The notes under the pieces: generated by a model
Told to the model about the DNA's origin: nothing
Databases searched by the model: none
Seen by the model: the letters and a program-made list of their open reading frames with translations, nothing else
Source: Isurus oxyrinchus
Taxonomy: Eukaryota
Length of the DNA: 64,000 nt
Direction of reading: 5' to 3'
Assembly (NCBI GenBank): GCA_026770705.1
Contig: JANJGN010000007.1
Span: 179,428,001-179,492,000, forward strand
Program-made: the position numbers and the translations under genes
Part shown: piece by piece, positions 1,511 to 62,154 of the stretch
How the letters are laid out: every line of letters begins with the position of its first letter
Position numbering within the stretch: the stretch's first letter is position 1

Positions 1511-4500
1511 TGGTGATGAACATCCACCTATCACCGAGACATCACAAGATCCAAAAGTCCAAGAGGAAGAAGATAAATGTCATGGACCGAAAGGAGGAAT
1601 TCCAAGTGAAGCTCAAACCAGTGTGGAAAATCTTCACACATCTAACTCAATTTCAAAACAGTTGGATCAAATAAAGTCAGCTGTACTCGACTCCTGTGCC
1701 CAGACCATTGGGTTCAAGCATTGTCGTCTCCAGGACTGGTTCGACGAAAACCATGCCGAAATGTGTGACCTGGAACAAAAAGAAGCAGCTTGCGTTGCTT
1801 AGTAGAACAACCCAAAAGGTCTCACAAGTCAAGAAGGCACCATTCCAACAGCTCAAGGCTAATGCCCAAAGACAAATCTGGAAGATAAAGGCCATGTGGA
1901 TGGGAAGAGAGAGCCTGAGAGATCCAGCTATAGGCTGACCATCATGATATGTGAAGCTTTTATGAAGCCACAAGGATCACCTATAGACCAATGTCAAATG
2001 GACAAAATCCCCATCGCTCATAGGATAGTGTTTCTCTTCTCAAGGTTAAAAATGTCATCCATCAACATTGGAAAGAACATTTGGAGTATCTCCTCAACTG
2101 TGAATCCACAGTGGCAGCTTCCCCCAGTACCCTGGGAAATACCTTGATTGTTTCCACAGCATGATTCATCTCCTCTCCTGAAGATAGTTACAACTGTCAC
2201 AGTCCTGAGTCATGGAGACAGAATCTTTGGATGAACCACCATCAATGAGAGAGCTGCAAAAAGCAATCAAGAGGATGAAAAGTATAGAATCGATGGTATT
2301 CCAGCTGAGGTCTTCAAAGCTTATTCTCACATTGAGATTCCACGCACTCATCCTATGGATTTGGGAGGAAAAAGAACTCCCTGTCCCCATGACTCAGGAC
2401 TGTGACAACTGTAACTATCTTCAGGAAAGGAGATGAATCATGCTGTGGAAACGATCGAGGTATTTCCCTCGTGTCCATGCAGGGAAAATCCTGACATGCA
2501 CTCCTGAATCCTAAATGTCTTGTGGCTGAGGAAATCCTCCCAGATACAGTGTGGCTTTAGACCTTCCACAGGAACCTTTGATTCAGTCCATATAGCCAGA
2601 AATCCTAGAGAGATGTCAAGAACACCACCAGGATCTCTTCATTGCATTTATTGACCTGATGACATTTAATTTGCAAGGCTCTGTGGATTGTGCTCCAAAG
2701 GTTTAGATGTTCATGAAACTTCATCATAATTCTGCACCTGCTTCATGATTTTTTAAAAAAATGTGTTCATGTGATGTGGGCATTGCTGGTTAGGCCAGTA
2801 TTTATTGCCCATCGCTAATTGTCCTGGAGAAGATGGTGAACAGCCGCCTTGAATTGCGGCTGTCTGTGGTGTAGGTATGCCCACAGTGGTGTTAGCGAGG
2901 GAGTTGCAGGATTTTGACCCAGTGACAGTGAAGAAAACGATATATTTCCAAATCAGGATGTTGTGTGGCTTGTAGGGGAACTTCCAGGTAGTGGTGTTCC
3001 CATGTGTCTGCTGCCCTTGTCCTTCTAGATTGGAGTGGTTGTGGGTTTGGAAAGTGCTATCTTAAGATGGCTTGGTGAGTTCCTGCATTGCATCTTGTAG
3101 GTGATGCACACTACTGCCACTGTACATTGGTGGTGGAGGGAGTGAATGTTTGTGGATGTTGTGCCATTTAAGTGGACTGCTTTGTCCTGGTTGGTGTCAA
3201 GCTTCTTGAGTGTTGTTGGAGCTTCACTCATCCAGGCAAGTGGGGAGTATTCCATTGCACTCCTGACTTGTGTTATGTAGATGGTTGTCAGGCTTTGGGG
3301 AGTCAGGAGGTGAGTTACTTGCTACAGAATTCCTAGACTCTGACCTGCTCTTGGAGCCACAGTATTTATGTGGCTAGTCCAGTTCCGTTTCTGGCCAGTG
3401 GTAACCCCCCCAGGATGTTGATAGTGGGGATTCAGAGATGGTAATGCCATTAAAGGTCAAGTTGCAATGGCTAGATTCTCTCTTATCGGAGATGGTCATT
3501 GGCTGGTACTTGTATGGTGTAAATGTTATTTGCCACTTGCCAGCTCAAGCCTGGATATTGTCCAGGTCTTGCTGCATTTGGACATGGACAGCCTCAGCAT
3601 TTGATGAATTGCGAATGGTGCTGAACACTGTGCAAGCATTAGCGAACATATCCACTCTGACCTTATGATGGAAGGAAAGTAATTGATGAAGCAGCTGAAG
3701 ATGGTTGGGCCAAGGACACTACCCTGAGGAACACTTGCAGTGATGCCCTGGAACTGAGATGATTGAACTCCAACAACCACAATCATCATTTTTTGTGCTA
3801 GGTATGACTCCAACCAACAGAGAGTTTTCCCCCTGATTCCCAGTTTTGCTAGGGTTCCTTGATGCCATGCTCAGTCAAATGTTGCCTTGATGTCAAGGGC
3901 AGTCACTCTCACCTCACCTCTGGAATTCAGCTCTTTTGTCCATGTTTGAACCAAGGCTGTAAGGAGGTCAGGAGCTGAGTGGCACTGGCAAAACCTAAAC
4001 TGAGCATCAGTGAGCTTGAAAGCACTATTGATGACCCCTTCCATCACCTTACTGATGATCGAGAGTAGACTGATGGGGTGGCAATTGGCTGAGTTAGATT
4101 TGTTCTGCTTTTTGTGTACAGGATATACCTGGGCAATTTTCCATATAGCCGGATCGTTGCCAGTGTTGTAGTTGCACTGGAACAGCTTGGCTAGGGACAC
4201 AGCAAGCTCTGGAGCACAAGTGTTCAGTTCTGTTGCTGGAATATTGTCAGGGCCCATAGCTTTTGCAGTATCCAGTGCCTTCAGCCATTTCTTGACATCA
4301 CGCAGAGTGAATTGAATTGGTACTTGTGATGCTGGGAACCTCCGGAGGAGGCCGAGATGGATTATCTACTCGGCACTATTGGCTGAAGATGGTTGCAAAT
4401 GCTTCAGCCTTGCCTTGTGTACTGATGTGCTGGGCTCCCCCCATCATTGAGGATGGGGATATTTGTAGAGCTGCCTTCACCAGATTTTTGTTTAATCGTC

Positions 4501-6530
4501 ATGATTGAAATTGTTCCATCTATCACTTGCTAATTATACTGTTTTACACTCAAGTAGTCCTGTGTTGTATCTTCAGGTTGACACCTCATTTTTAGATATG
4601 CCTGATGCTGCTCCTGGTATGCCCTCCTGCACTCTTAACCAGGGTTGATCCCTGGTTTGGACATAATGGTAAAGTGGGTTACATGCCGGGCCATAAGGTG
4701 ACAGATTGTGGTTGAGTACAGTTCTGCTGATGGCCCACAGCACCTCATGGTTGCCCAGTGTTGAGTTGCTAGATCTGTTTGGAGTCTGTGCTACTTAGCA
4801 TTGTGGCAGTGCCACACAACATGATGGAGGGTATCCTCAATGTGAAGGTGGAACTTCGTCTCCACAAGGAATGTGCAGTGGTCACTCCTACTGACAGTTA
4901 CGGATAGGTGCATCTGTTGCAGGCAGGTTGGTTAGGATGAGGTCAAGTGTGTTTTTCCCTCCTGTTGGATCCTGCACCACCTGCTGCAGACCTAGTCTGG
5001 CAGCTATTTTAGCCAGTTCAGTCTCTCATGGTGCTGCCAAGCCACTCTTGGTGGCCCCCACCCAGAGGACATTTTGAGTCCTTGCAACCCTCATCACATC
5101 CTCCAAGTGCTGTTCAATGTGGAGACTGATTCATCAGCTGAGCGGTATGCTAAGTGGTAGTTACCAGGAGACTTCCTTGTTCATGTTTGATCTGACGCCC
5201 TGAGACTTCATGGGGTCCGGGGTCGATGTTGAGGACTGTATACCACTGTTCCGCCACCTTTGCTTGGTCTGTCCTACTAGTGGGAGGGAATGGTGGTTTC
5301 TGGGACATTGTCTATAAGGTATGATTCCGTGAGGATGAATATGTCAGGCTGTTGCTTGACTAGACTGAGAGACACCTCTCCCAATTTTGGCACTAGCCCC
5401 CCAGGCAAGGAGAATTTTGGAGGGTTGAGAGGGCTGAGTTTGCCGCTGTTGTTGTTGTTTCTGGTGCCTTGGTCGATGTCGTGTGGTCTGTCCGTTTCTT
5501 TCGGACTTGGCAATGGTTTGATACAACTGAGTGGTTTGCTTGGCCAATTCAGAGGGCATTTAAAAGACAAATGTAGGCCAGACCAGGTAAAGACTGCAGA
5601 TTTCCCTCCCTAAAGGACATTAATGAACCAGATGGGTTTTCATGACACTCGACAGTCGTTTTGTGGTCATCATTCGACTTTTAATTCCAGGTTTTTATTG
5701 GTTTCAAATTTCACCACCTGATGTGGTGGGATTCGAACCATGTTCCCAGAGCATTATTCTCGGTCTCTGGATTACTGGTCCAGTGACAATACCACTATGC
5801 CATTACCTCCCCTAAATGATATTCTGACTGCAACAGTCTCAAGTGGGAGGTCTGAAACAGATGCCGTCAAAATCCAGACCGATGTCGAGCAATACTGTGT
5901 GATCGCCTCCATACTATTCACAATCTACCTGACAGTGGCTACTCACCTCATCAAAGATAATTGTACTTCTGTGTGAATATCAACACTACCTAGATGGAAA
6001 ACCCTTTAACCTCTGTCCGAAAACTAAACTGCTGACTATAGAAATAAATAATCTAAGGTTTGCAGATGACTGCAGTGTCATTGTCCACTCTCTAGCAGAT
6101 TTGCAAGCCACTCTATCTCTTAAATTCTGCCTACAAGAGGCTTGGCTTGTCCTTGAATATTTCCAAAACAAAACTCATTAACCACACCTGGTCAGCCAAA
6201 TATTTAACCTTGCATATATGTTGAAGGAGAGACTCTGGAATATGTTGAGACCTCCCATACCTTTGCAGGTACCTCTCTCAAAAGGCTACAGTTGACGAGG
6301 TGATGCAACACTGGATCAACTGCACCAGCTAAGACTTCTATAAATAATGGCAGAGAGCCCGAGTGTGAAGAGCAGTTGTCATCATCACTTTCCTGTACTA
6401 CAGTGAGACCTGGACTGTGTATCAATGACACAAAAACACTTGAGAAATTCCATCAGCAATGCCTCTGCTGCATCCTTTGGATTCAGTGGGAGGACTGTTG
6501 AACAAATGTTTGTCCTTAGACTCAGACATT
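1510..6530 (+). mobile_element. Decayed RTE-clade LINE, split by the LINE inserted at 2750-5815
   Basis: RTE-like remnants (DWFDEN, FIDL, LLHD|ILTATV across the insertion, FADD, SETWTVY, ILWIQW). Confidence 0.7.
2750..5815 (-). mobile_element. Full-length single-ORF CR1-group (Crack/L2-like) LINE with a tRNA-derived 5' head
   Basis: The minus strand starts GGGGAGGTAATGGCATAGTGG...GGTTCGAATCCC, followed by APE (QQPDIFILTESYL), RT ([29 protein letters not shown]) and an A-rich tail. TSD ATGAT at 2745-2749 and 5816-5820. Confidence 0.88.
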
Positions 6531-6539
6531 TACAGCACA

Positions 6540-8275
6540 ATTGGCTCATCGTGTCCGGAATGGTCTACAAAGATCTGACTACGCTGATCCCATTTTCCAG
6601 CGCTTGGCCCATAGTCCTGGAGGCTATGGTAACACGAGTGAATATCTAAATACTACTTAAATGTTACAAGGGTTTGTGACTCAACCACCCTTTCAAGCGG
6701 TGAGTTCCAGACTCCCATCACCCTCTGGGTGAAAACATTTCTCTTCAAATCTACTCTTATCCTTCCACCTCTTATCTTAAATCTCTGCCCACTCTTTATT
6801 GACCCCTCTACTAATAGAAAAAGTGCATTCCAATCCACCCTATCTATGCCCCTCATAATTTTATACAATTTATCAGGTCCCCTCTCAACCTTCGCTGCTC
6901 CAAGGAAAACAGCCCCAGCCTATCCAATCTTTCCTCATAGCTCAGACCCTCCAGCCCAGACAGGATCCTGGTAAATCTCCTCTGCACCCTCTCTAGTGCA
7001 ATCACATCCTTCCCATAATGTGGTGACCAGAACTGCACGCAATACTCCAATTGTGACCTAACCAGCTTTTTATGCAGTAACATCATAATCTTCCCACTCA
7101 GCTAATAAAGGCAAGTATCCCATATGCCTTCTTAACCACCTTATCTACCAGCCCTGCTACCTTCAGTGATCTGTGGATATGCAGACCAAAGTCCCTCTGA
7201 TCTTCAGTACTTTCCAGGGCCCTACCAATCATTGTGTAATCCCTTGCCTCGTTAACCTTCCCCAAGTGCGTAACCTCACACTTTTCCGGGTTGAATTCCA
7301 TTTGCCACTGCTCTGCCCACCTTACCAGTCTATTGCTATCCTCCTGTAGTATACGGCTATCCTCCTCACTATTTATCACCCTACCACTTTTTGTGTCACC
7401 CGTGAACTTCTTAATCATACCCCCTACATTTAAGTCCTAATCATTTATGTACACCACAGACAGCAAGGGCCCCAGCACCGAGCCCTGTGGAACCCCACTA
7501 GAAACAGACTTCCAATCACAGAAACATCTCTCTGCCGTCGCCCTCCGCTTTCTGCCTCTCAGCCATTTTTGGATCCAACATGCCACTTTGCCTTGGATCC
7601 CCTGGGCTCTTACTTTCTTGACCAGTCTGCCATGAGGGACCTTATCAGAAGCCTTGCTAAAGTCCATGTAGACCACATCAAATGCATTATCCTCATCAAC
7701 ACTCCTCGTTCCTCAAAAAATTCGATCATATTTGTCAAACACGACTTTCCCTTATCAAACCCATGCTGACGATCTCTGATTAATCCATGTCTCTAAAAGT
7801 GCAGATATATTCCGTCCTTCAGAATTTTTTCTAGTAGCTTCCCCACTACCAAGGTTAGACTGACTGGCCTGTAATTTCCTGGCCTATCCCTTCCTCCCTT
7901 TTTGAATAATGGGATGACATTAGCAGTCCTCTGGCATCTCACCTGTGGCCAGAGAGGATTTGAAAATTACTGCCAGGGCCCCTGATATTTCTTCCCTTGC
8001 CTCCCTCAACAGCCATCCCGTCCGGGCCTGTAGATTTATCCAATTTTAAGGCTGCTAAACCCGCTAATATCTCCTCTCTCTCTCTATGTAACTTCCTCTA
8101 ATATTTCACAGTCCTCCACCCTGATGTCTATACCTGCGTTGACTTTTTCCATTGTGAAGACCGACTGAAAGTACATTCAGTACTGACCCACGTCTTCCGG
8201 GCCCACACACATTACCTCTATGGTTCCTAATTGGCCCTACTCTTTTCTTAGTTATTCCCTTGCTTTTTATATATT
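6540..8275 (-). mobile_element. CR1-clade LINE, 3' half
   Basis: [41 protein letters not shown] and [11 protein letters not shown] remnants. Confidence 0.9.
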
Positions 8276-8280
8276 TAAAT

Positions 8281-11200
8281 GGGGAGGTGATGGCGTAGTG
8301 GTATTATTGCTGGATTAGTAATCCAGAGACCCAAGGTAATGCTCTGGGGACCCAGGTTCCCACCTTGGTGGGGTTCAATAAAAATCTGTAATTAAAGGTC
8401 TAATGATGACCATGAAACCATTGCTGATTGTTGTAAAAACCCATCTGGTTCACTAATATCGTTTAGGGAAGGAAACCTGTCGCCTACATGTGACTCCAGA
8501 CCTACAGCAATGTGGTTGACTCTTAAATGCCCTCTGAAATGGCCTAGCAAGCCACTCAGTTGTAACAAACCGCTACAAAGGCACAAAAAGGGAATGAAAG
8601 CAGATGGACCACGCAACATCAACATAGGCACTGAAACGACAAAGGCAATCGCAGCCCTGTTGAGAGACCTCCTTACTAACATCAGGGGGCTAGTGCCAAA
8701 ATTGGGAGAGCTGTCTCACAGACTAGTCAAGCAACAGCCTGACATAGTCATCCTCATGGAATCATACCTCACAGATAATGTCCCAGACTCCTCCACCACC
8801 ACCCCTGGGTATGTCCTGTCCCACCGGCAGGACAGACCCAGCAGAGGCAACGGCACAGTGGAATACAGTTGGGAGGGAGTTGCCCTGGGAAACACCAACA
8901 TCGATTCCGGACCCTGTGAACTCTCATGCCATCAGATCAAACATGGTAAGGAAACCTTCGGCTGAGTACCACGTACTGCCCTCCCTCAGCTGAAGAATCA
9001 GTACTCCTCCATGTTGAACATCACTCGGAGGAAGCATGGAAGGTGGCTAGGACGCAGAATGCACTCTGGGTGGAGGACTTCAATGTCCATCACCAAAAGT
9101 GGCTCGGTAGCACCACTATAGACTGAGCTGGCCAAGTTCTAAAGGATTTGGCTGCTACACTGGGTCTGCAGCAGCTGGTGAGGGAACCCCCCTTCCCCAA
9201 TTAGGAACCATAGAGGTAATGTGTGTGGGCCCGGAAGACGTGGGTCAGTCCTGAATGTACTTTCAGTCGGTCTTCACATTGGAAAGGGACAACGCATGTA
9301 TAGGCATCAGGGTGGAGGACTGTGAAATATTAGAGGAAGTTACATAGAGAGAGAGGAGGTATTAGCAGGTTTAGCAGCCTTAAAATTGGAAAAATCTACA
9401 GGCCCGGATGGGATGGCTGTTGAGGGAGGCAAGGGGAGAAATATCAGGGGCCTTGACAGTAATTTTCAAATCCTTGAACATACTTGACCTCACCCTCACC
9501 AACCTGCCTGCTGCAGATGCATCTGTCCATGACAGTATTGGTACGAGTGACCACTGCACCATTATTGTGGAGATGAAGTCCTTCCTTCACATTGAGGGTT
9601 CCCTCCGTTGTGTTGTGTGGCACTACCACCATGCTAAATGGAATAGATTTCAAACAGATCTAGCAACTCAAGTCTGGGCATCCATGAGTTGCAGTGGGCC
9701 ATCAGCAGCAGCAGAATACCACTCAAACACAATCTGTAACCTCATGGCCCGGCATATCCCCCTCTCTACCATTACCATCAAGCTAGGGAATCAACCCTGG
9801 TTCAATGAAGAGTGCAGGAGGTCATGCCAGGAGCAGCACCAGGCTTACCTAAAAATTAGGTGTCAACCTGGTGAAGCTATAATACAGGGCCAAACAGCAT
9901 AAGCAGTAAATGATAGACCGAGCTAAGCGATCCCACAACCAACAGATCAGATCTAAGCTCTGCAGTCCTGCCACATCCAGCTGTGAATGGTGATGGACTA
10001 CTAAACTCACTGGAGGAGGAGACTCGACAAATATCCCCATCCTCAATGATGGGGGAGCCCAGCACATCAGTGCAAAAGATAAAGCTGAAGAATTTGCAAC
10101 AATCTTCAGCCAGAAGTGCCGAGTGGATGATCCATCTTGGCTTCCTACAGAGTTCCCCAGCATCACAGATGCCAGTCTTCAGCCAATTCGATTTATTCCA
10201 TGTGATATCAAGAAACGGCTGAAAGCACTGGATACTGCAAAGGCGATGGGCCCTGACAATATTCCAGCAATTGTACTGAAGACTTGTGCTCCAGAACTTG
10301 CTGCACCCTTAGCCAAGCTGTTCCAGTACAGGCATCTACTCAGCTATGTGGAAAATTGCCCAGGTATGTCCTGAACACAAAAAGCAGGACAAATCCAACC
10401 CGGCCAGTTACTGGCCCATCAGTCTACTCTCCATCATCAGTAAAGTAATGGAAGGGGTCATCAGCAGTGCTATCAATTGACACTTGCTTAGCAATAAAAA
10501 CCCAGTTTGGGTTTTGCTGGGGCCATTCAGCTCCTGACCTCATTACAGGCTTGGTTCAAACATGGACGAAAGAGTTGAACTCCTGAGCTGAGGTGAGGGT
10601 GACTGCCCTTGACAGACATAAAGGCAACTTCTGACTGAGTGTGGCATCAAGAAGCCCTAGCAAAACTGGAGTCAATGGGAATCGGGGGAAACTGTCAGCT
10701 GGTTGGAGCCATACCTAGCACAAAGGAAGATGTGGTTGTTGGAGGTCAGTCACCTCAGCTCCAGGACGTTCCTCAGGATAGTACCCTCAGCCCAACTATC
10801 TTAAGCTGCTTCCTCAATGACCTTTCTTCCATCATAAAATCAGAAGTGGGGTTGTTTGCTGCTGATTGTGCAATGTTCACCATTCGCGACTCCTCAGATG
10901 CTGAAGCAGTCCATGTCCAAATGCAGCAAGATCTAGACAATATCCAGTTTGGGCTGACAAGTGGCAAGTAACATTTGCACCACACAAATGCCAGGCAATG
11001 ACCATCTCCAACAAGAGAGAATCCAACCATCACCCCATGACATTAAATGGCATTACCATCACTGAATCCTCCACTATCAACATCCTGGGGGTTGCCACTG
11101 GCCAGAAACTGAATTGGACGAGCCACATAAATACTGTGGCTATAAGAGCAGATCAGATGCTAGGAATCCTGCAGCGAGTAACTCACCTCCTGACTCCCCA

Positions 11201-11740
11201 AAGCCTGTCTACCATCTACAAGGCACAAGTTAGGAATGTGATGAAAACTCCTCATTTGCTTGGATGAGTGCAGCTCCCACAACACTTAAGAAGCTTGACA
11301 GTGTCCAGGACAAAACAGCCCGCTTGATTGGCACCACATCCACGAACATTCAGTCCCTCCACCACTGACGCACAGTAGCGGCAGTGTGCACCATCCTCAA
11401 GATGCACTGCAGGAATTCACGAAGGCTCCTTCGACAACACTTTTAAAACCCACAACCCCTACCATCTAGAAGGATAAGGGCAGCAGAGGTTCCCCTCCAA
11501 ATCACTTGGAAGTTGCACTCCAAGTCACTTACCATCCTGACTTAGAAATGTGTAGCTGTTCCTTAACTGTTGCTGAGTCAAAATCCTGGAACTCCCTCCC
11601 TAACAGCACTGTGGGTGTACCTACACTGCAGCGTTTCAAGAAGGCAGCTCACCTCCACCTTGTCAAGGGTAACTCTGGAAGGGCAATAAATGCTGCCCCA
11701 GCCAGCAGAGCCCACACCCTGTGAATGAATAAAAAAAAAA
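8281..11740 (+). mobile_element. Full-length single-ORF CR1-group (Crack/L2-like) LINE with a tRNA-derived 5' head, second copy
   Basis: Starts GGGGAGGTGATGGCGTAGTGG...CTGGATTAGTAATCCAG. APE (TNIRGLVPKLGEL..QQPDIVILMESYL, DFN, SDH), RT and C-terminal region follow. Ends CACACCCTGTGAATGAATAAAAAAAAAAA. Confidence 0.9.
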
Positions 11741-23800: not shown

Positions 23801-26800
23801 GATTACCTTGCCAAGGTCAAAGCTGACGTGTTTCTGCAGGAGTGTATGATACAGCATCTCAGCTCCTACAGGCAGTGGTCATGAAGGTGCTCCCATGGCC
23901 ATCAATCTGGTCAGGAGGAAATGACTCACGTTCCTCCGGCGTGGGTGTTCTAATGCCAGGAGGCAACTTCACCATCTCCAAGGTGATGGGTAAGCACCTC
24001 CTTGTAGCAGACGTATTGTACAAGAATGTTCTGCTCTGGCAAAACAGCAAGTGGTTGGTGGTCCTTCAGCTTGCACTGCTGCTGGTGACTTCCAGGCCGG
24101 TCATTCTGTGTGGTGACTTCAACTGCATCATTGATGCAGCTGGACGATCCGGCAGGGCTGAAGGCAGATTGAACGCCACGTCCAGACTCCTGATGGAAAC
24201 AGTAAAGGATGCCAAGCTGCACGATGTCTTCAGTAACCCTGCAGATGGAGCACTGTGAAGATACACCTGGTCGCGGCCAGACAGGCCTATCCGGTCCAGG
24301 ATAGACTTCCTGTTTGTGCCCTGGGTGTTCACGATCAGATCCACCGATGTCAAGCCAGTGTTCTTCTCTGATCACTGCCTCCTACTGGCTGACTGTCACT
24401 CACAGGAAGACCAGGAAGTTGGCAGAGGAACGTGGAAGCTGAATGTGCAACTGCTGACCCCAGAGAACGTTGAGGAACTCAAGGAATTACAAAGGTTGGA
24501 AAATCGTGAAGCCCCTTTGAGTCCCTGACAAGCGATCAAGGAGAATGTCAAGAAGGTTTTCATCCTCAAAGGTGTTCAGAATGCTAGAAAAGAACAGAGG
24601 GAAATATCCCGACTCCAGAAAAACATGCAGAACCTGCTCCGGCTGCAGATGACAGGGGTCGATGTCAAAGAGGACCTCCAAGAGGTGAAGAGCCTTCAAG
24701 CCTCGGTCTTTTGTTCGGAGGCTTCCAAGATCATCTTGCGGTCCAGAGTCTACCCTGTGGTGCAGGATGAGGCGTGTTCACATTTCTTCTCCCAGAAGGT
24801 ACATGGAGAGAACTCTGTGATCAGCCTGAAGGAAGAACATGGTTTACTAAAGTCCTTGCAGTCCGATATTTTGAGTATCAGCAAATCCTTTTATGTCGGA
24901 TTGTATGACGTGATTTCATAGCTGAGGAAGGCACAAGTCATGTGAGAATGGTGAGATGGTAGAATGTGACGGTTCTTTTGTCTAGGGTTCTGCAATTCTA
25001 ATTATTGTTGTCTTTGGCTGGTAAAATAAAATTCTTCATACTTTCGTGGGTTAGTTACTTCTTTGGAGTTTTATTTTTTCTCGTTCTGCAACTGATAATT
25101 CATCAATTCAGACCCATGGGGCAAAGGTTACAACTTCAAGGCAGAAATGTTAATTAAAATTCAGCAACCTGGTGTGACATATGTGCAGCCGCAGTGGTGA
25201 GCAGCTCTTGTGGTCAGGCTCATGTGACAAGGTCGTCCTTTGCCTATTGTTAGAGCTTGACTGGCTGCCAATGTATCTACATGGGTGAGAAGCCTTTTTT
25301 TGCATTGTCAAGCCTGTGGCAAGGGCTTCACCTCATCAGGCACCCAAAACAAGTCAAAAGCACATCACGCAGAGGGGAAGCTCCTCGGCATTATGGAACG
25401 AACATGGTTAACGACAGGTCTGCTGAGTCAGAGGACGGAAAGTGGTCTGCCTCTCGCAGCTTTTGCTGTAATTCTGCTGAGCAGCTTCACATGTTTGCCA
25501 GCTTGCTACTACCCAATGCATTCCTCTCAAGCAGCTCTTGGCTCAGAATTGGCTTTTTTGGGCCTCAGTACCTACGCGCAGTCCTGAAACAGCCACCTTT
25601 TATGAGAGCACATGAGCAGAGGGACCGATAGGCATTGCAAAAAATCGCTCGGTATGATTACCATCACTGAATCCCCCACTATCAACATCCTGGGGTTTCC
25701 ATTGACCAGAAACTGAACTGGACTAGCCATATAAATACTGTGGCTACAAGAGCAGATCAGAGGCTAGGAATTGTGTGACGAGTAACTCACCACTTGACTC
25801 CTCAAAGACTGTCCATCATCTACAAGGCACAAGTCAGGAGTGTGATGGAATACTCTCCACTTGTCTGGATGAGTGCAGCTCCTACAAAACAGAAGAAGCT
25901 GGACACTGTCTAGGACAAAGCAGTCTGCCTGATTGGCACCCCTTCCACAAACATTCATTCCCTCCACCACCAACGCACAGTAGCAGCAGTGTGTACCATC
26001 TACAAGATGCACTGCAGGAATTCACCAAGGCTTCTGAGACAGCACCTTCCAAACCCATGATCACTACCATCTCGAAGGACAAGGGCAGCAGATAGATGGG
26101 AACACCACCACCTGGAAGTTCCCCTCCAAGCCACTCACCATCATGACTTGGAAATATATCGCCGTTCCTTCACTGTCGCTGAGTCAAAATCCTGGAACTC
26201 CCTTCCTAACAGCACTGTGGGTGAACCTACACCACATGGACTGCAGTGGTTCAAGAAGGCAGCTCACCACCACCTTCTCAAAGGGAACTAGGGATGGGCA
26301 ATTAGTGCTGGCCTAGCCAGCAAAGGTCACATCCCATGAATGAATAAAAAAAAACTCAGTATAATGTTTGCTATTTGCAAGTCCTCTGATGGTACAATTT
26401 TTTCTCAAGTATTAATAACGAAATGTAATCTGCTTCTGCTATCTCTTTTCTATATCCAAACATTTTAAAAGAATTTCATGTGTCCAGACCAGGAATTTGA
26501 TCCTCTTCGAGTTTGGTTAGTTGATTGAATATTTTTTAGTTTAAATGCAGTTATATATTCTGCTTTCTTGCTATCATTGCCTGTGATTTTGTACTATTTA
26601 TCCCTTTATGGCCTGACTTCCTTGTTTTTACAGAAACATAAGTTTAAAAATGATACTATTTTGTTTTACGCCCCTTGGTAATTTAGTTTCATTGTTTCTC
26701 TTTGTCTTGCTATTTTTTTTTTGCTTCCTTCCTGACCTGTTCATATTCTCCTTTGTCTTTCACTCCCTGCTGTCTCAATACTTAATGTACATGTAGCACC

Positions 26801-29800
26801 TCGGTCAATGTTTCCCTTAAACCTTTATTCATCTGTGGTGTCTCATTATTGTTTTGTTTGGCCTTGTTTTTCAGCAGAACATTTTTTTCCAGGACACTGA
26901 ACACCATTTTAAATATTCCCCATTGCTATTCTACATCGTTGTTTGCCAATATTGTTGTCCATTTTATTTTTCTAAGTTCTATTCCCCGTCCCTTGAAATC
27001 AACTTTTCCCCAGGCTGTTAGCTGGTTGTCTTCATAATTATGGCCTCAATTATTACCTTAGAACATATTATATTATGGTCACTATTTCCTAGATGTTCCC
27101 CTACTCTTAATTGTTCTGGCTCATTCTCCATTTGTCGACCCCTTCTTGGGCTTCATAAATAATGGATTGAAAGGAGTCCTGTACACTTTGTAGGAACTCT
27201 ATTCCTTTACCCCTTTACCTGCCTGTTCTGGCCAGTTAATTTCAAGATCTGGGAGATGGTGGCATAGTGGTAATGTCGCTGGGGACTAGTAATCCAGAGA
27301 CCAAGGCTAATGCTCTGGGGACTTGGGTTCAAATCCCACCGCGACATCTGGTGGAATTTGAATTCAGTTCATAAATCTGGAACGTAAAGCTAGCCGCAGT
27401 GATAGTGACCATGAAACTACCTTCGATTGTCGCAAAAACCTAAATGATTCACGAGTGTTCTTTAGGGGAGGAAATCTGCCATCCTTAACTAGCCTGACCG
27501 ACATGTGACTCCAGACCCACAGCAATGTGGTTGACTCTTTGCTGCCCTCTGAAATGACCTAGCAATATTAGTTCAAGGGCAATTAGGGACGGGCAACAGC
27601 CTTGCCAGTGCTGCCCACATCCCATGAAAGAATAAAAAAAAGTTAGAATCTCCCATGATTCTATTTTTTTGATTTATTTTCCTAGTTCATCTGTATATTT
27701 CTTCCTGCACCTTCCTTCCTCCTGAGAGGCCTGTAGACGACATCTATTATTGTGATTGATACTTGATCATCTTTTACCTCTATCCATGTGGCTCTATTTC
27801 TGCCTTACTGACAGCTGTCACTTCTTTCTCCTGCTATTATGTTACATCTTAATTAAAGTGTCGCGACTCCCATTTCCCCTTTTTTCCCCGCTCTATCTTT
27901 TACAAATGTTGTATTCTGCAGTGTTTAATTCCCAGTCCTCATTACGCTGTAGCCATGTCTCAGTAATCTCCACTATATCTGCCTCCAGGCAATGTGTTAT
28001 TGCGATGAAAGTAAAATATTTCAGATGCTGGAAAGCTGAAATAAAAACAAATATTGCTGGAAAAACTCAGCAAATCTGGCAGCATCTGTGGAGAGAGAAA
28101 CAGAGTTAATGTTTCTAGTCTGTATGACTCTTTAAAGCTTGCATTTATAATGTATTATTGCCCCCAGTTTCCCTGTTCTATTACCTGCATTGCTGTACAG
28201 TTTAAGTCAGTTTGAATAGAAGTTCTTTTCATTTTATTCCTTTTGCACTTCTGTTCTATAACTATATATTCTTTGACCACTTAGCTCAACCTGCCCTGTG
28301 GTCTCATTTTAAGTTTGGTTTATATTTAGACTTTTGATTTGTTGTGAATCCTCCACTATCTTGCCCAATCCTACCACTGTATTTGTAGTGCATCTTTATT
28401 TAGCCTTTACATTAGGATAGTGGTCCCATTCTAGTTTAGGTGAAGCCTGACCTATTGATACAATTCCCTCCTGTCCCAGTACTTGTGCCAGTGCCCTGTT
28501 AAAAAAAACCTTTCTTTACTGCACCAACCTTTTGGTCACTTTTTAATTCCCCTGATCTGTCTGTAAATGTGCATGTGGCTTGGGCAATATCTAGTGATCT
28601 TTACTGTTCAGGTCCTGCTTTTGAATTTAACTCTTAACTCCTGTTACTCCCTCAGCAGATCCTTCCCCCTGTTTCTACTTGCGTAATTTGTTCTGATGAG
28701 AACCACAACAAATTGATTTTCCCCCACTCTTTCCAAATTTGATTCCAGCCGCCTCGAGCTATCCCTTACTCTGACACTGGGTAGGCAACACACGCTTTGG
28801 GACTCTGATTCATGGCTGCAGACGATGCTATTTATTCCCCTAATTATACAATCCCCTATCAATACCTCATTTCTGTTCACTCTCCACCAGCCTAATCCTT
28901 CCTTCCGCCAAACCTTCTAGACCATGATGCCTTGGTCTGCACTGTGGCTGTCCTGAATACAGCCTTGCTGTTTGCCTTCGCAGGCAGCGAGCACATTGTA
29001 CCGGTTAGACAGGACCAATGCCTATGGGGCCTCCTTTACAACCTCTCCTAAGCTACCCCGCTCTGACAGTCACACTCTTCTTCCTGAACCTGTGTTTTTC
29101 CCAAGGGTGTGACTGTGCTCTGGATAGAACTATCCAGAAATTTATCTCCCTCCCTTATGCTTCGGAGTGTCTGTAAATCTCACTCCAGCTGAAAGACCCT
29201 GAGCCAGAGTGGCTGAAGGCAGAGGCATTTTTTGTATGTGTGACAATCCAGCACAGTGACAGCCTGTCTGTCCATAAACTCTCAGATGCTATAGTTTCAA
29301 CATAGAGCTTGTCCTGCCATCTCTCATCTTTTTATTTATTTGTTTATAGATAACTTGAAATAAAATTAGGTATATCTGATGTGACTAAGTGACCACTGAA
29401 GGCAGTTGTGTGCCAACCACGTTGGTGAAGCACTGGAGTTACTGATTGATGAGGGTTGTTTACAAGGTAATGTGGAGCCGCCTTTTTGAACCACTGCATG
29501 TAGGTACACCCACAGCGCTGTTAGGGAGTGAGTTCCAGGATTTTGACCCACCGACAGTGAAGGAACGGCGATATGTTTCCAAGTCAGGATGGTGAGTGGT
29601 TTGGAGGGGAACTTGCAGGTGCTGGTGTGCCCATGCATCCGCTGCCCTTATCCTTCTTGGTGACAGAGGGTGCAAGTTTGGAAGGTGATGTTGAAAGAGC
29701 CTTGGTGAGTTGCTGCAGTGCATCTTGTAGATGGTACTCATTGTTACCGCTGTGCGTCGGTGGTGGAGGGAATTAATATTTGTGGATGGGGTGCCAATCA

Positions 29801-32800
29801 AGCAGGGCTGCTTTGTCCTGGATGATGTCGAGCTTCTTGAGTGTTGTGAGAGCTGCACTTATCCGGGCAAGTGGAGAGCATTCCATCACACTGGAGACTT
29901 GTGCCTTGTAGATGGTGGACAGGCTTTGGGGCGTTAGTAGGCGTGTTACTTGGCACAGAATTCCCAGACTCTGACCTGCTCATGTAGGCACTATATTTAT
30001 ATGGGTTATTTGGGTTATTATTCAAAGAGAGGTGTGACTGAAGAAATTATCTACATGTAAGATGGACAAGCTACATGTGGACAGTAAATGCTGATTTTGC
30101 TAACTATGTCTCCATTCTGAGAATAAATAACAAAATTCACTGTTTTGGCTTGTTTGTGAAAATTAGCCATAAGAACCAAGCTTCAGTAAGGAATTTGCAT
30201 CTTCAGATGAAGACGGGGCAAAATTCGTGAGGGCTGGGGGAAGAAAGGGTCAGGAAATTGCAAAGATTGATACATCTCAGTTTTTGTTTCATTATATCAG
30301 GTTCAACCAAAGAAACTGATCAGAAATTCTTTAAGATTCTCAAGAATAAATCAGTAAAAACGAAAGACTTCAGGTATTTGCCACTGTACTTCTGCCAGTT
30401 CTTCACAGGAGTGGTTTAAATGTTCACCATTTTGGGTTATCTTGTTAGCCACACCTAGTATATTTGGCTGAATACCTCACTGCTCCTTCTATTGCCAGCT
30501 TCCTCCTATTCTCCCTGTCCTGTGGCAGTACCAGTTCTTGCTGGGGTTAGAATTTCAATGATGTCTCCCGTCCTTCAGTACCTAACCAAGTGACCATCCT
30601 GTGTGTGTGAATCTGGGCAGAGAATGTCAGGGTGAGGCCTGATCTCCCCATTATGTTTCAGCAGAGGGATCACAAAATAGTAATCAGAAGCAGAACCCTG
30701 GCTCTCACCCACTCCTTTCATCCAGCAGGCCCAGGGACGCTAAGATAACTTGAAGTTACTCCCCAATTCAGCACCAATAGGTTACTTCCTAAATAATGGT
30801 GCTCTCCTTTCGAATAACACCTTGTTTAATTGTCACATCAGAATGGATCCCTCTACCACTGATATCTCATCGTCTAATGGACAAATTAAGTAGTTGCAAT
30901 GTCTTGGAGCTGTAACACGTGATATTTGAGCATGAATGCTGCCCTCTAGCTGTGCTTTTCTTCTGTATGAAGTGGACACTAGCTGGATGTCAGTGTCGAT
31001 GGCACAATCCAGGCAGTAAGTTCAAATGATCTCTTAAGCTGCAGTTTTTGAAACACCCAATTGGGTTTCTGCCTGTAGCCATGGGTCGTTCAGGTGAGTT
31101 AATATTATTTTACCTGTTACTATTGTTGGTTTTGGTGGTAGCTTACCGATTGAGGTGATTTAATAATTTCGGTCATAGATTGGGTGCAGAGGTGTGACTT
31201 GATTGTTTTTATGCACCTCCTGAGTCAGAGCTTCAGGTGACTGTACAATTCACAGCTGAGACAATGTCTAGTGCATTACTGCGCCAGACAGGTTGGGAAT
31301 GTTCCAGGTTTGTTGACCATTGGATTAGATTTAGCCAGTGTTGGTAGAGTTGGGTCAGGAGCATTGTACCATATCCCTGCATTAGAGAGGAAAAGAGCAC
31401 CCAGTGTGAGTGATCTTGCTCATGATCTGCTGAGTACCGATAAGTGATGAGGGAGAGGAATCCGGGCTGATGTCAATATTTGCACCCCAGCTACTACAGC
31501 AACACATTGTTAAAGCTGCATCTGTTATATTCAAGCTGAGTAGGAGAGTATAGGACAACAACCTGACTGAGAACACCAACCTGCGAGTCTACCAAGCCTG
31601 CATCCTCAGCGTAGTCCTCTACAGTAGTGAGACCTGGACAACATATAGTAGGCAGGAGAAAAGACAGAACAATTTAGATCTTCGTTGTCTCAGACGTACC
31701 CTTGCCATCTCTTGGCAGGACAATGTAACCAACTCAGAGGTCCTGGATTGTGCTAATTCCATCAGCATACACTCATTGCCAAACCAACTATGTCTGAGCT
31801 GGCTCGACCAAGTTCATCAGATGGATGATGACCATATACCCAAAGACCTTCTGTATGGTGAACTGGCCACTGGGTCATGACCCGGACGTTCATACCTTCA
31901 TTACAAGGAAACTTGCAAGAAATGAAGTTGGCAGACATTGGCACTGACAACTAGGAGACAGTCGCTGACAGTTGCGACTTCTGGAGGCTGTCTGCTTGGA
32001 AGAGCATTGGAATAGGTGAACAGAAATGAATAAAGTTCAGCTAGCTGAGAAGATGGCCCAGAGAAAACAGGCGAGTTGATCATGCACCTTCCCTGCCTAT
32101 TGTCTCTCTCTGCTGCAAATGCAGCAGAGCTGGCAATGCCAGAGTGGGGCTCCTGTGCCTTACCAGGTGATGCTTAACACCAAATTGGCCAGCATAGCAC
32201 AAACCATCACTTCATCGAGACATAAGGCTGCCACTCCACTAACTGCATCTGTACTGCCCAGTACCACATTTGACAATGCCTTTCTCCACAGGGTCATGAG
32301 TTGATGCTAAATGTTGGGCCCTTGAGACACTTTAGAATATACAGTAAACTTGAAGGTATGAATGGAACTGTATTATATCAAGTTGTCCTAAAACATTTCA
32401 CAGTTAATCAGTCAATCAGAGAAAGCAATCACTGTTTTGCAGTCAAGTCAATTTTCCCTCAGCTGAATTGTACAAAATAGTGTTGAAAAAAGTGACCAGT
32501 TAATATCTGTTCTTTATAATTTCAGTTGAGGGGTGAATGGCGGCCAAAACACTGGGTCGACATGCCACACTTATTTGAACATTGTCTTGGAGCCTTCAAA
32601 ATTACCTGTGCAGGCAGCAGGGACCTTCAGCTGCCTAAGCTCTGTAATTCCCTCCCAAAACATCTCTGCCTCCCCACTTCATTTTCCTCTGTTTAGATGC
32701 TCCTTAAAACCTACTACTTGGACCAAACATTTAATCATCTGGCCAAATGTCGTCTTGTGTGGCTCGGTAGTTTGGTGTCAAATGTTGGTTGACAAAGTTC

Positions 32801-35800
32801 CTATGAAGCACCTAGGAATGTTTAATTAGGTTGAAGGTACTATTAAATCAACAACTTGTATTTATACATTCCATCAGAAAGGCAATACAGTACTCTTCAT
32901 TGCATCTGTTCAAAACATCATAAAGTCATAATTATGTTCTGCAGATTTTTAAAAAACTCTGCTTCTCTCCCTTTTTAGAGGTGTGATGCTTGCTAGGTTG
33001 CAGTTCCAAAGTTCACTGTTGTCTTAACGTGCATCACACACAAGACTGCAATGTTGCTCAGTTCCTGCTGATGGTGCTCTAGAGGTGTGGAGGCATTCCC
33101 ATAATCAGCTGTGTGATCAGCATGAAGCGTATGTTACTGCAGCTCTTATTCCAAAGCATTTTGTGAGTTGTGAACTGAGTTGGTTCGCTTGTTGGAAGCA
33201 TTGAACATCTGAGTTGCAAAGACCAGAAGTTCCAGATTCAGCTCCTGATATGCTTGCATTAATGTAGGGCCATTCACAACCTTTTAATTGCAGCTCCAGC
33301 AACATTCAAAAGCTTGACGTCATCCAGGACACAGCTGCCTGCTTTATTTGCACCCCATTCACCACCTTAAACATTCACCCACTTAACCACTGATGCACAG
33401 TGACAGCTGTGTACACCATCTACAAGATGCACTGCAGCAACTCACCAAACCTTTTTTGACATTCAGGCTTGGGCTGATAAATAGCAAGGAACATGCTTGC
33501 CACATGAGTGCCAGGCAATAGAGAATTTAAACATTTCCTCTTGACTTTCAATGGGATTACCGTCGCTGAATCCCCCACTGTCAACATCTTGGGGGTTACC
33601 ATTGACCAGAACCTGAACTGGACTAGCCATATAAATACTGTGGCTACAAGAGCAGGTCAGAGGCTGGGAATTATGTGACATGTAACTCATCTCCGGACTC
33701 ACCAAAATCTGTCCACCGTTGCTACAAGGCACAAGTCAGGAGTGTGATGGAATACTCTCCACTGTCTTGGATGAGTGCAGCTCCCACAACACTCAAGAAG
33801 GTCGACACCATCCAGGACAAAGCAGCTTGCAGGATTGACATCCAATCCACAAACGTTCACCACCGACACAGTGGCAGCAGTGTGTACCACCTACAAGATG
33901 CATTGCAGTAACTTGCCAAGCCTCCTTCGATAGAACCTTCCAAACCCACAGCCTGTACCATCTAGAAGGACAAGGGCAGCAGTTGCAAGGGAACGCCACC
34001 ACCTGCAAAGTTCCCCTCCAAGCCACATTCCACCCTGACTTGGGAACTATATTGCTGTTCCTTCACTTGCTGGCGTCAAAATTCTGAGACTCCCATCCTA
34101 ATAGTGCTGTGGGTGTACCTACACCACATGGAATGTAGTGATTCAAGGAAGAGACTCATCACCACCTTTTTGGGGGCAACTAGGGATGGGCAACACCAGC
34201 GACGTCCACACCCTGTGAATAAAAAAACGAAGAAAGCGTTCAGGATGTCTCAAAGCATTTTACAGCTAGTTATGTACTTCTGTTCTAAAGAAGAGTATTG
34301 GTCTTGAAGCGTTGACTCTCTTTCTCTGTTTGCAGATCCTGCCAGACCTTCTGAGTTTTTCCATCACTTTCTGTTTTTATTTCAGATCTCCAACATCTGC
34401 AATATTTTCATTTTATATAATGTACTTCTAAATATGGGCACTGTCGTGATGTAGAGATTTGCAGCAGCTAGTTTTTGCACAAAGAGATAATTGACCTGTT
34501 TTTGATCGAGAGTCTTAGGATCTGAAAAATGAACTGTACCTGCTTCTACACAGATGCTATTTCGTAAATCGTACACTTCCAGTATCTGGAGTAATATACT
34601 TTAAATTTGGCTGAGTGGGAGACTGACCAGAAATTGGGAGAAAAATGGGATAGGTATGTTATGGTTCGAGGGGTATAAGTTAGGAAAAGGTATGACAAGG
34701 TTGAAGGCGCTTTGGAACAGAATTTGAGTGCACAAGTATAACAATAGTTTCAGGCAGGAGACCTTTGATCCTTCGTGCCCACCTACCTGCAGTCCATCTG
34801 TGTCAGCCATGGCTGAGTGGTAGCACTCTCGGCCCTGAGTCAGATTGTGTGTTCATTTGTTTTTTTCACTCACGGAATGCCAAGGCCAAGATTTATTGCC
34901 TTTGAAGCTGGGGGTGGGACACCTTCTTGAATGGTTGCAGTTCTAAGATGTGGCTTGGTACAGCTGAATGGCTTCTTCGGCCATTTCAGAGTCAGCCACA
35001 TTGCTGTGGACCTGGAGTCACATATAGGCGAGACCTGGTAAGGCTAAGGAAAGGACTTTAGTGAACCCAGATGTTTTAAACAATCTGGTAGTCAGATAGT
35101 CACTGTGACTGCAAACTTTTTATTCTAGACTTATTTAATTAACTGAATATAAGTTCCCAGCTACTGTGATGGGATTTAAAGCCGTGCTTTTTGATTGGTA
35201 GTCCAGGCCTCTGGATTTCTAGCCCAGTGACATAACGACTATGCTACCAATCCAGAGATTTGAGCCAATAATCTAACCTGTCACTCCAGTTACAGACTCA
35301 GGGAGTCCTGCACTGTCAGAGGTACCGTCTTTTGGGTGAAATGTTAAACTTCCTGCGCTCCCATGCTGCAAGTTCTTTCAAATCTCAGGAAGGATATATT
35401 GGCCTTGGAATGGCTGCAGCAGAGATTCACCAGAATGATACTGGGACTTAGAGTTAAACAATGAGGACAGGTTGCATCGCCTTGGTTTATATTATCTCAA
35501 ATTTAGAAGGTTGAGGAACAACCTAATCAAGGCCTTGAACATGTTAAAGCAATTTCATTGTAGCTGAAAAACAAGTCACAGTGTGTTCCTACAGGCATTT
35601 GGCAGCAGCCCTGAGGGTAACCTTGCTGGATTTGCATTAAGGTACATCACTGGGCAAACACAGAGCTGAACTAGCCTAGCAGGTTTACTTTGCGGCTGCT
35701 GTGTGTTGAGACCTAGCACAACGGTTGCAGTTGGGATTTTTTTTGTTGTCAGTTGATGAGCTGGTCAGTATTGTGTATTGAAGGCTTTGAGCCCTCACTG

Positions 35801-61206: not shown

Positions 61207-61387
61207 GTATGATCAGCAATAACCTGCACTTGGTGACCGGTAACATCACTTCAACACTGTCTCGTCAAATTCAGCCCTGTTTGATGACTAATCCCCAACT
61301 CTAACCAGAGCAAAATGCTACGCATGCTGGAAACCTGTAATAAAAATGGAGAATGCTGAGAATAGTCAGCAGAATTGGGAGCATCTA

Positions 61388-61780
61388 ATTTTATTCTTCC
61401 ATGGGATGTGGGTGTCATTGGCAAGACCAGAATTTGTTGCCCATCCCTAATTGCCCTTGAACTGAGTGATTTGCGCCGACATTTCAGAGAACATTTAACA
61501 GTCAACCACATTGCTGGGGGCCTGGAGTCACACGTAGGCCAGACAAGGCAAAGACACATTTACTTCCCGAAAAGGCATTGGTGAACCAGATGAGTTTTTA
61601 AGACAATTGAAGGTTTCGTGGTCACCATCACTGAGATTAGCTTTCAATTCCTGGTTTTATTATTTAATCTAAATTCCGATTGCTGCCTCGGTAATATTTG
61701 AACACATGCCTGTCCCCAGAAGATTAACCTGTGCATTTGGATTACCAGTCCAGTGATGTTACCATTATTGCACCGCCTCT
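61388..61780 (-). mobile_element. tRNA-headed SINE of the same type as 27251-27640, inserted in a PLE-derived fragment
   Basis: The reverse complement shows the head CTGGACTGGTAATCC, the body GACTCCAGG..CAGCAATGTGGTTGAC, the junction CACTCAGTTCAAGGGCAATTAGGG and the family tail. Confidence 0.8.
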
Positions 61781-62154
61781 CACCCTCTCTGGAGAAAGAA
61801 ACAGAGTTAATGGTTCAGGTCAATGACCTATCAAACCTCCTGCATTCTCTGACTTTCTCTTACTTCCTTCTTTTTAGCTGTTTTTTCCATTTCCTTTCAT
61901 CCTTTTTCTTTTTTTTTTCTTGTCTTGGAATCATAATATTTGAAATTTTTGGCGAGTTTAGGATGAAATGGGGTCGAAGAAGACTGGGTGGAGCAAGCAC
62001 ACGGTGATATAAGTTAAGAGCTGGACCATGTTCCTTTAAACTTGCTCCACCATTCAGTAAGATCATGGCTGATCTTCTCCACCAAATCTTTCCCACCTGA
62101 TCCCACATCCCTTGATTCCCTGAGTGTCCAAAAATCCATTGAACTCTGTCTTGA

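Follow-up and report, generated by a model that had tools for sequence, protein, structure and literature searches.

A shark LINE that begins with the tRNA-like head of its partner SINE: a candidate for transcription by RNA polymerase III

Which polymerase would transcribe a long interspersed element (LINE) whose first bases are those of a tRNA-headed short interspersed element (SINE)? The question is raised by a stretch of 64,000 nucleotides (nt) from the shark Isurus oxyrinchus (assembly GCA_026770705.1, contig JANJGN010000007.1, positions 179,428,001 to 179,492,000 of the forward strand), referred to below as the window, which is repeat-rich DNA with 45% GC and no N. A sequence-only reading of the window had drawn attention to a LINE at 8281-11740 with a tRNA(Thr)-like head, no ORF1 and very few sense-strand runs of four or more T (T4 runs), and had proposed it as a candidate RNA polymerase III (Pol III)-driven autonomous retroposon. 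The results presented here support the head as the true 5' terminus of two independent full-length copies of this LINE, and reveal a partner SINE that reads as the same LINE with almost exactly its open reading frame (ORF) removed, both termini being common to the two. This SINE-LINE relation, underplayed in the sequence-only reading, is the firmest and most informative result of the analysis, while transcription of the LINE by Pol III is plausible on the logic of the sequence only.

BLAST of 8281-11740 against the window recovered a single other copy reaching position 1 of the element (minus strand, from 5812 down to ~2749), together with nine copies of the 3' part only and four short elements matching just the first 270-300 nt. 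We refer to the element at 8281-11740 (plus strand) as copy A and to that at ~2749-5812 (minus strand) as copy B. Both are full-length and decayed, copy A running from the head through a leader, a frame for endonuclease and reverse transcriptase (APE-RT) and a 3' untranslated region (3'UTR) to an A run. The 21-mer GGGGAGGTRATGGCRTAGTGG occurs exactly at 8281 (+) and 5812 (-), the starts of copies A and B, and with three mismatches at 27250 (+), the start of a SINE; the number of matches expected from shuffled sequence is 0. Aligned from the first G, the two copies share a tRNA-like head of ~95 nt (8281-8375 on the plus strand in copy A), a SINE-type body of ~165 nt, a LINE-only leader of ~115 nt and the APE motif LLTNIRGLVPKLGEL. 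The part of the leader held in common with the SINE body, which includes a conserved SINE-type core, occupies 8376-8538 (+). As the flanking sequences of A and B are unrelated, the two are separate insertions, and an inverted segmental duplication of one copy is ruled out. The proposal that two independent full-length copies share one start is thus borne out by the common 21-mer, the collinearity into APE and the unrelated flanks, and the head-LINE junction is the same in both. The target-site duplication reported for copy B is unconvincing, the claimed 5-mer sitting 3 nt off the head, and inspection revealed none at copy A.

An identical junction could in principle arise in ways that leave the head foreign to the LINE. 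Assembled contigs from four runs, two of DNA and two presumed to be RNA, were aligned to the stretch at 80% likeness (631,654, 653,010, 22,104 and 11,034 aligned contig pieces over the four runs), and with ~630,000 pieces per DNA run the SINE family is extremely abundant, so that independent SINE insertions might have landed upstream of two 5'-truncated LINEs. Against such chance proximity, A and B have an identical junction and identical sequence over ~115 nt of LINE-only leader, and neither a SINE tail nor an A run lies between the SINE part and the LINE; we rejected this explanation and give it next to no probability. A constant junction would also be produced by a target-specific LINE homing into the SINE at a fixed site, in which case head, body and tail would be those of a split SINE. 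The 3'-only copies speak against this. Eight of them are clearly 5'-truncated: 25657-26354 (+), which has the tail and no SINE head or body upstream, 29459-30004 (-), 33469-34227 (+), 37594-38951 (+), 41539-42477 (+), 43833-44174 (-), 52312-53076 (-) and 53073-53488 (+). The ninth, at 62168-63961 (-), extends to 39 nt from the window end and may or may not be truncated. All nine reach one common tail, the truncated copies ending in that tail and its A run, and no SINE head or body adjoins any truncated copy in the window. Furthermore, the LINE ORF ends within the tail, which includes its final codons and its stop. Homing into the SINE was rejected on these grounds and is, in our estimate, very improbable.

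Evidence from outside the two copies points in the same direction. One contig of a second organism spans 8519-8713, and gene-model fragments (eukprot), two of them from the whale shark (P0004, P0005), read from SINE-type body into APE. Among the loose ends listed, which are the best supported of ~14,000, no other upstream sequence appears near the APE start, and contig depth in the LINE-only leader bin (8547-8668) is similar to that in the APE bins, although depth is a weak measure on contigs. These observations bear on a third alternative, in which a single template switch or recombination event put the SINE 5' part onto a LINE that had lost its own 5' end. The headed copies would then be an offshoot mobilised in trans by a conventional LINE whose own 5' end is not among the sequences of the window. 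LINE 5' ends are known to acquire small RNAs by template switching, as for U6-L1 (PMC4494074, excerpted text), full-length copies read in the window number only two, and A and B diverge in a neutral-looking way (by codon position 0.173, 0.161 and 0.189; 71 synonymous versus 148 non-synonymous differences), so that the copies may stem from one source at one time. The missing alternative junction, the even depth and the same body-to-APE continuity in the gene-model fragments all tell against it, and we consider such a passenger lineage unlikely.

The headed LINE family is old and very abundant in the shark, ~3.2 kb long and equipped with one ORF. By contig alignment it is huge in two shark organisms, and it is also present in the whale shark and the sevengill shark; the closest protein matches to the window are whale shark gene models and Heptranchias perlo. 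Separately, 7% of the sampled words of the shark stretch are present in a coral metatranscriptome run (X20), a signal that may reflect contamination, environmental DNA or the conserved SINE core.

To delimit the SINE we take as reference a candidate start codon of the LINE ORF at 8539-8541 (+). Two SINEs, at 27250-27637 (+) and 61385-61790 (-), consist of head and body, continue to CACTCAGTT, 23 nt past the candidate ATG, and then pass into CAAGGGCAATTAGGG, which corresponds to the 3'UTR of the LINE preceded by its final three codons and stop. The junction of the second SINE, right after CACTCAGTT, is the major class in the contig alignment. The leader part of the SINE measures ~258-281 nt and its 3'UTR ~60 nt, and SINE positions 331-402 are 73-85% identical to the 3' ends of seven LINE copies. 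In the contigs, loose ends after 8561 continue into the SINE tail in 1103 (X1), 1320 (X5) and 82 (X18) records, and in a second class the loose end follows 8538, immediately ahead of the ATG (29 records in X18). Contigs that skip from 8538 to 11681 number 5, 8 and 3, and the skips as a whole run from 8535/8538 to 11679/11681. SINE junctions lie either directly ahead of the candidate ATG or 23 nt beyond it, joined in both cases to CAAGGGCAAT-TAG, which encodes the K-G-N-stop of the ORF. Two variants in the window, 34860-35250 (-) and the head-less 44544-44870 (+), retain more of the LINE leader; the former also keeps ~110 nt of the LINE 3' end, and the latter has a further, different junction. 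In all, at least four junction classes are distinguished. Together, the alignment and the skips depict a short element made up of the LINE 5' part and 3' part only, the bipartite pattern of an internal deletion.

The coding capacity of the family was assessed through its protein relatives. A phmmer search with a 189-aa N-terminal piece returned 158 proteins at E <= 0.001, six of them full-length (885-983 aa) and matched at residues 4-100, which correspond to APE. With full-length LINE proteins as tblastn queries, 8504-11407 of copy A aligned to residues 29-853 of P0135 and 3037-4992 of copy B to residues 206-897 of the same protein. Pfam RVT_1 matched one of seven stop-free pieces of the window, at 23.4 bits and under the cut-off of 29.6, and is already annotated on many homologous protein fragments; the Pfam endonuclease gave no match on the window's stop-free pieces. 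On the phmmer and tblastn results, we judged an APE at the ORF N-terminus and an RT domain both to be present in the family. At the 3' end, homology to P0079 reaches residue 958 of 962 and is followed by K-G-N-stop in two better-kept copies. At the other end, the gene-model fragment P0001 (eukprot) begins at the ATG of element position 259 (window 8539) and reads into APE, matching positions 259-384 of copy A at E 3.5e-07. These data suggest a family layout in which a putative leader of 258 nt precedes an ORF of ~950 codons, followed by a 3'UTR of ~60 nt and an A run. The ATG at position 259, in the context GAAATGG, is a candidate start only; reading frames in the leader vary between copies.

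Neither full-length copy retains an intact ORF, both carrying many stops and frameshifts. In copy A the frame from the candidate ATG is broken, the APE-RT coding remnant extends over 8675-11663 (+) with its K-G-N-stop end decayed, and the tail held in common with the SINE (last codons, 3'UTR and A run) occupies 11664-11740 (+). Among the proteins found, those of the headed family are fragments only. The full-length relatives P0135 and P0079 (962-983 aa, with N-terminal APE) lie on contigs of 3.6-4.0 kb, and these short contigs imply that compact single-ORF relatives exist elsewhere. That the LINE lacks ORF1, as proposed from the sequence, was confirmed, the head and leader running directly into the APE-RT frame and leaving no room for it. 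This lack is not remarkable on its own, because ZfL2-2, an L2 LINE, has no ORF1p and yet retrotransposes. Five predicted proteins (P0014, P0060, P0072, P0120 and P0136) match query residues 1-57 only, the part from the SINE-type body, and are probably SINE copies absorbed into gene models.

Several local rearrangements accompany the LINE copies. Copy A carries a foreign patch of 278 bp at 9197-9474 (+), a piece of another LINE that matches, at 94% identity and from the same end point, the inverted stretch 7955-8234 (-) lying immediately ahead of copy A. The patch replaces ~18 bp of the LINE with no duplication, and looks like templated repair copied from 1 kb away, not a new insertion. At 11579-11631, up to 50 contigs per DNA run jump back 41-53 nt in both DNA runs, which implies either that most family members are ~48 nt longer than copy A in the 3' region or that they have a short tandem duplication. 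The truncated copies 52312-53076 (-) and 53073-53488 (+) abut at their 5' ends with a 4-nt overlap, in opposite orientation and each with its own tail outward. Ahead of the copy at 33469-34227, the segment 33289-33461 contains the same LINE region again (positions 2989-3156 of copy A ahead of 2669-3453), a local partial duplication or nested insertion.

In type-2 Pol III promoters an A box lies some 8-20 nt downstream of the start, with a B box following at a further 30-60 nt. An exact A box, TRGCNNAGTGG, occupies element positions 11-21 in copy A (8291-8301), copy B (5792-5802) and the SINE at 27250 (A box at 27260), so that the first base of the element precedes tRNA position 1 by 3 nt. An exact B box is present in copy B (element 74-84, window 5729-5739) and in the SINE (element 77-87, window 27326). 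The type-2 spacing is thus found in copy B and in the SINE, whereas copy A has the A box alone. Of the head features described in the sequence-only reading, the A box in both copies and the anticodon-like arm with its AGT loop are present, while the B box stands in copy B and is lost from copy A. The window as a whole contains nine A-box matches versus 1.2 expected. Exact A boxes at 15706, 34608 and 34810 (+) have the form TGGCTGAGTGG, unlike the head studied here, and may come from another tRNA-type SINE family.

The scarcity of T4 runs was evaluated on the sense strand, omitting the foreign patch and the A tails. The headed family contains 9 such runs in 13,778 nt (0.65 per kb). For comparison, five LINE fragments of the window that lie outside the family total 28 in 5,752 nt (4.9 per kb); one of them, at 404-1400, has the four runs that had been counted for a CR1 element at 411-1400. 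When dinucleotide composition was kept by shuffling, 16.5 runs were expected in the family (6 of 300 shuffles as low as observed) and 23.4 in the control LINEs (276 of 300 as low). Shuffling of synonymous codons in the in-frame segments gave a similar picture, with 5 observed versus 11.1 expected in the family (20 of 1000 as low) and 22 versus 19.9 in the controls (795 of 1000 as low). A-runs are at the expected level in both. The family therefore has about half of the expected T4 runs, and the controls are not depleted.

The T4 runs were also compared copy by copy on an alignment. Copy A has three, at element positions 1183 (within the foreign patch), 2232 and 3161. The earlier count of two outside the patch was correct, as was the statement that the run near 11441 is absent from sister copies (0 of 10 other copies); the same statement fails for the run near 10512, which is also present in copy B and absent in the two other copies covering the site. 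Eight of the nine family runs are private to one copy, and the remaining one is common to A and B (two of four covering copies; position 2232 in A, 1820 in B). It lies in the FGFR motif of the RT, where A and B read TTT-TGC and the two others TTC-CGC, and CpG decay explains it. Private sites plus a single common one imply that the ancestor had no T4 run or one. The depletion is real and specific to the family, and is partly plain composition.

The reading that we favour, at a likelihood somewhat short of even, is that Pol III makes the full-length LINE RNA as a template for retrotransposition. The SINE's internal type-2 promoter at the very first bases of the LINE would recruit TFIIIC and Pol III irrespective of the sequence that follows, and because the LINE carries that promoter at its first bases, LINE and SINE transcripts would begin at one and the same nucleotide. 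Its reach would be set by the first oligo-T, and on an ancestral sense strand apparently without T4 it could traverse the entire element and produce a full-length RNA, which the family's reverse transcriptase would take up via the common 3' tail, like SINE RNA. The protein would come from rare transcripts that are capped, whether made by Pol II or by read-through, which we consider likelier, or, more boldly, from cap-independent translation of the Pol III RNA. The head itself may have been acquired when the reverse transcriptase switched template from the 5' end of the LINE RNA onto a tRNA or SINE RNA; alternatively, ORF deletion in an already headed LINE may have given rise to the SINE. A Pol III template would fit with the report that Pol III-made Alu needs ORF2p only and that a Pol II-driven one needs ORF1p as well (PMC2666806, excerpted text).

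A number of observations weigh against a Pol III template. The genomic reading comprises two full-length copies, both dead, in one 64-kb window, and copy A has lost its B box. The tRNA likeness of the head is weak: ARAGORN called no tRNAs on the heads, Rfam at gathering scores found nothing on them, neither a tRNA nor a ribozyme family, and folding of the heads does not surpass that of shuffled sequence (z -0.47, -0.90 and +0.06), as is the case for the tails; an origin from tRNA-Thr is thus a candidate only. The best of the three heads, that of the SINE at 27250, scores 16.4 bits (E 0.42) on the Rfam tRNA model, whose gathering score is 29; at permissive, sub-threshold Rfam settings the head of copy B reaches 13.5 bits on the tRNA-Sec model, and that of copy A shows nothing tRNA-like. 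With respect to T4 runs, one is present in both full-length copies, and the overlapping copies share ancestry and are not independent samples in the statistic. An ancestor with at most one run versus an estimate of ~4 expected makes for a modest effect (p ~0.02-0.09). Much of the low density is composition, the T fraction being 0.21 in the family versus 0.25 in the controls. Moreover, the presumed RNA runs are assembled contigs and show no starts, strands or 5' chemistry, and a codon-position test for purifying selection between A and B returned a neutral pattern, which gives no sign of selection on a headed master or of autonomy.

Several of these points would be accommodated by a Pol II element with a fossil head, in which the leader acts as an internal Pol II promoter from position 1, the head is a relic of the origin of the 5'UTR, the SINE is a bipartite non-autonomous derivative and the scarcity of T4 is a by-product of composition and codons. 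As a rule LINEs are transcribed by Pol II, and bipartite deletion derivatives are considered to be products of that polymerase as well (PMC5786205, excerpted text). The Kozak-like context of the candidate ATG, the AATAAA motifs near the 3' end and the weak tRNA likeness would all be at home in such an element, as would the fact that the 7.5-fold gap in T4 density mostly disappears when composition is kept. What it leaves unaccounted for is the 2-fold depletion that remains in the headed family and not in the five other LINE fragments, the retention of exact A and B boxes at tRNA-like spacing, and the start of LINE and SINE at one nucleotide. Eight ATGs precede the candidate ATG in copy A and would impede scanning; alongside the good context of that ATG, they fit neither polymerase neatly. 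We regard a Pol II element with a relic head as a possibility to be taken seriously, if doubtful.

SINE-LINE partnerships are defined by a common 3' tail, and the origin of SINEs and of their conserved bodies is an open question. A headed LINE whose SINE is the same element minus the ORF would offer a concrete path from either class to the other. If the full-length RNA is indeed a Pol III product, the LINE would be the first such retrotransposon of the autonomous type, raising the question of how a 3-kb uncapped RNA is translated or escapes that need, and it would connect to the report that the polymerase, not the element, decides the need for ORF1p (PMC2666806, in part). Only tentatively, and with considerable doubt about the combination, the sequences can be read as a vertebrate LINE whose template would be made by Pol III from its own tRNA-derived 5' promoter, with oligo-T purged from ~3.2 kb of mostly coding sequence, a SINE that would have arisen by ORF loss, a conserved body of an ancient SINE superfamily that would be, or have turned into, a LINE 5'UTR, and either cap-independent translation or a division of labour between Pol II (protein) and Pol III (template). 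The abundance of the family in two shark organisms and its presence in the whale shark and the sevengill shark mean that material for tests exists.

We found no tRNA-headed or Pol III-driven autonomous LINE in the literature covered, which largely leaves out subscription journals and wholly leaves out Repbase and Dfam, so that an earlier description is possible. Literature searches with three short motifs taken from the head and body of the SINE returned unrelated matches only, and no relative was found among metagenome contigs by the exact 21-mer or by protein-alignment pattern. The known systems discussed in the following are compared on the basis of excerpts from the cited sources.

Among LINEs, a close parallel in layout is zebrafish ZfL2-2, a stringent-type element that, like the Isurus LINE, is compact with a single APE-RT ORF. 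L2 LINEs may encode one or two ORFs, and ZfL2-2 retrotransposes without ORF1p (PMC3880073); the excerpts mention no tRNA-like head on it, and it was assayed from a CMV (cytomegalovirus) promoter (PMC3880073). A precedent for LINE RNA made by another polymerase, lacking a normal cap, is provided by R2 and similar elements; R2 depends on transcription of the ribosomal RNA gene, and a ribozyme cuts its 5' end (PMC5786205). In the Isurus LINE, by contrast, the 5' end would be fixed by an internal promoter, and no ribozyme family is recognised by Rfam at gathering scores. U6-L1 chimeras resemble it in placing a small Pol III RNA ahead of LINE sequence (PMC4494074). As described, these are one-off events with variable LINE breakpoints, whereas the Isurus junction does not vary and has a complete ORF downstream of it.

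Among SINE-LINE pairs, two from cartilaginous fishes offer close parallels: HE1 and its LINE HER1 in sharks and rays, which share a 3' tail and belong on the SINE side to the V-SINE superfamily (PMC3747384), and SacSINE1, a shark SINE of the Deu type with an L2-2-type tail (PMC5499810). As in the Isurus pair, a tRNA-headed shark SINE with a conserved body carries the 3' tail of its partner LINE. Compared by description, these pairs are reported with a common 3' tail only, whereas the Isurus LINE also has the SINE head and body as its 5' end. SINEs derived from both ends of a LINE are likewise on record, including Bov-A and Bov-tA with Bov-B, SINE2-1_ACar with Vingi-2 and the hagfish SINE2-9/10 with RTE-4 (PMC5786205, PMC7245038, PMC4494074), and the parent clades reported so far are RTE, Vingi, Ingi and R2 (PMC5786205). 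In the excerpts of a Repbase-wide survey by Kojima, LINE 5' parts occur in SINE bodies only for RTE and Vingi, and conserved SINE bodies have no LINE counterpart (PMC5786205). The Isurus SINE resembles these bipartite derivatives in joining the LINE 5' and 3' parts by internal deletion; in the derivatives, as the excerpts describe them, the tRNA head sits on the SINE alone and not on the LINE, whereas in Isurus the LINE itself is headed.

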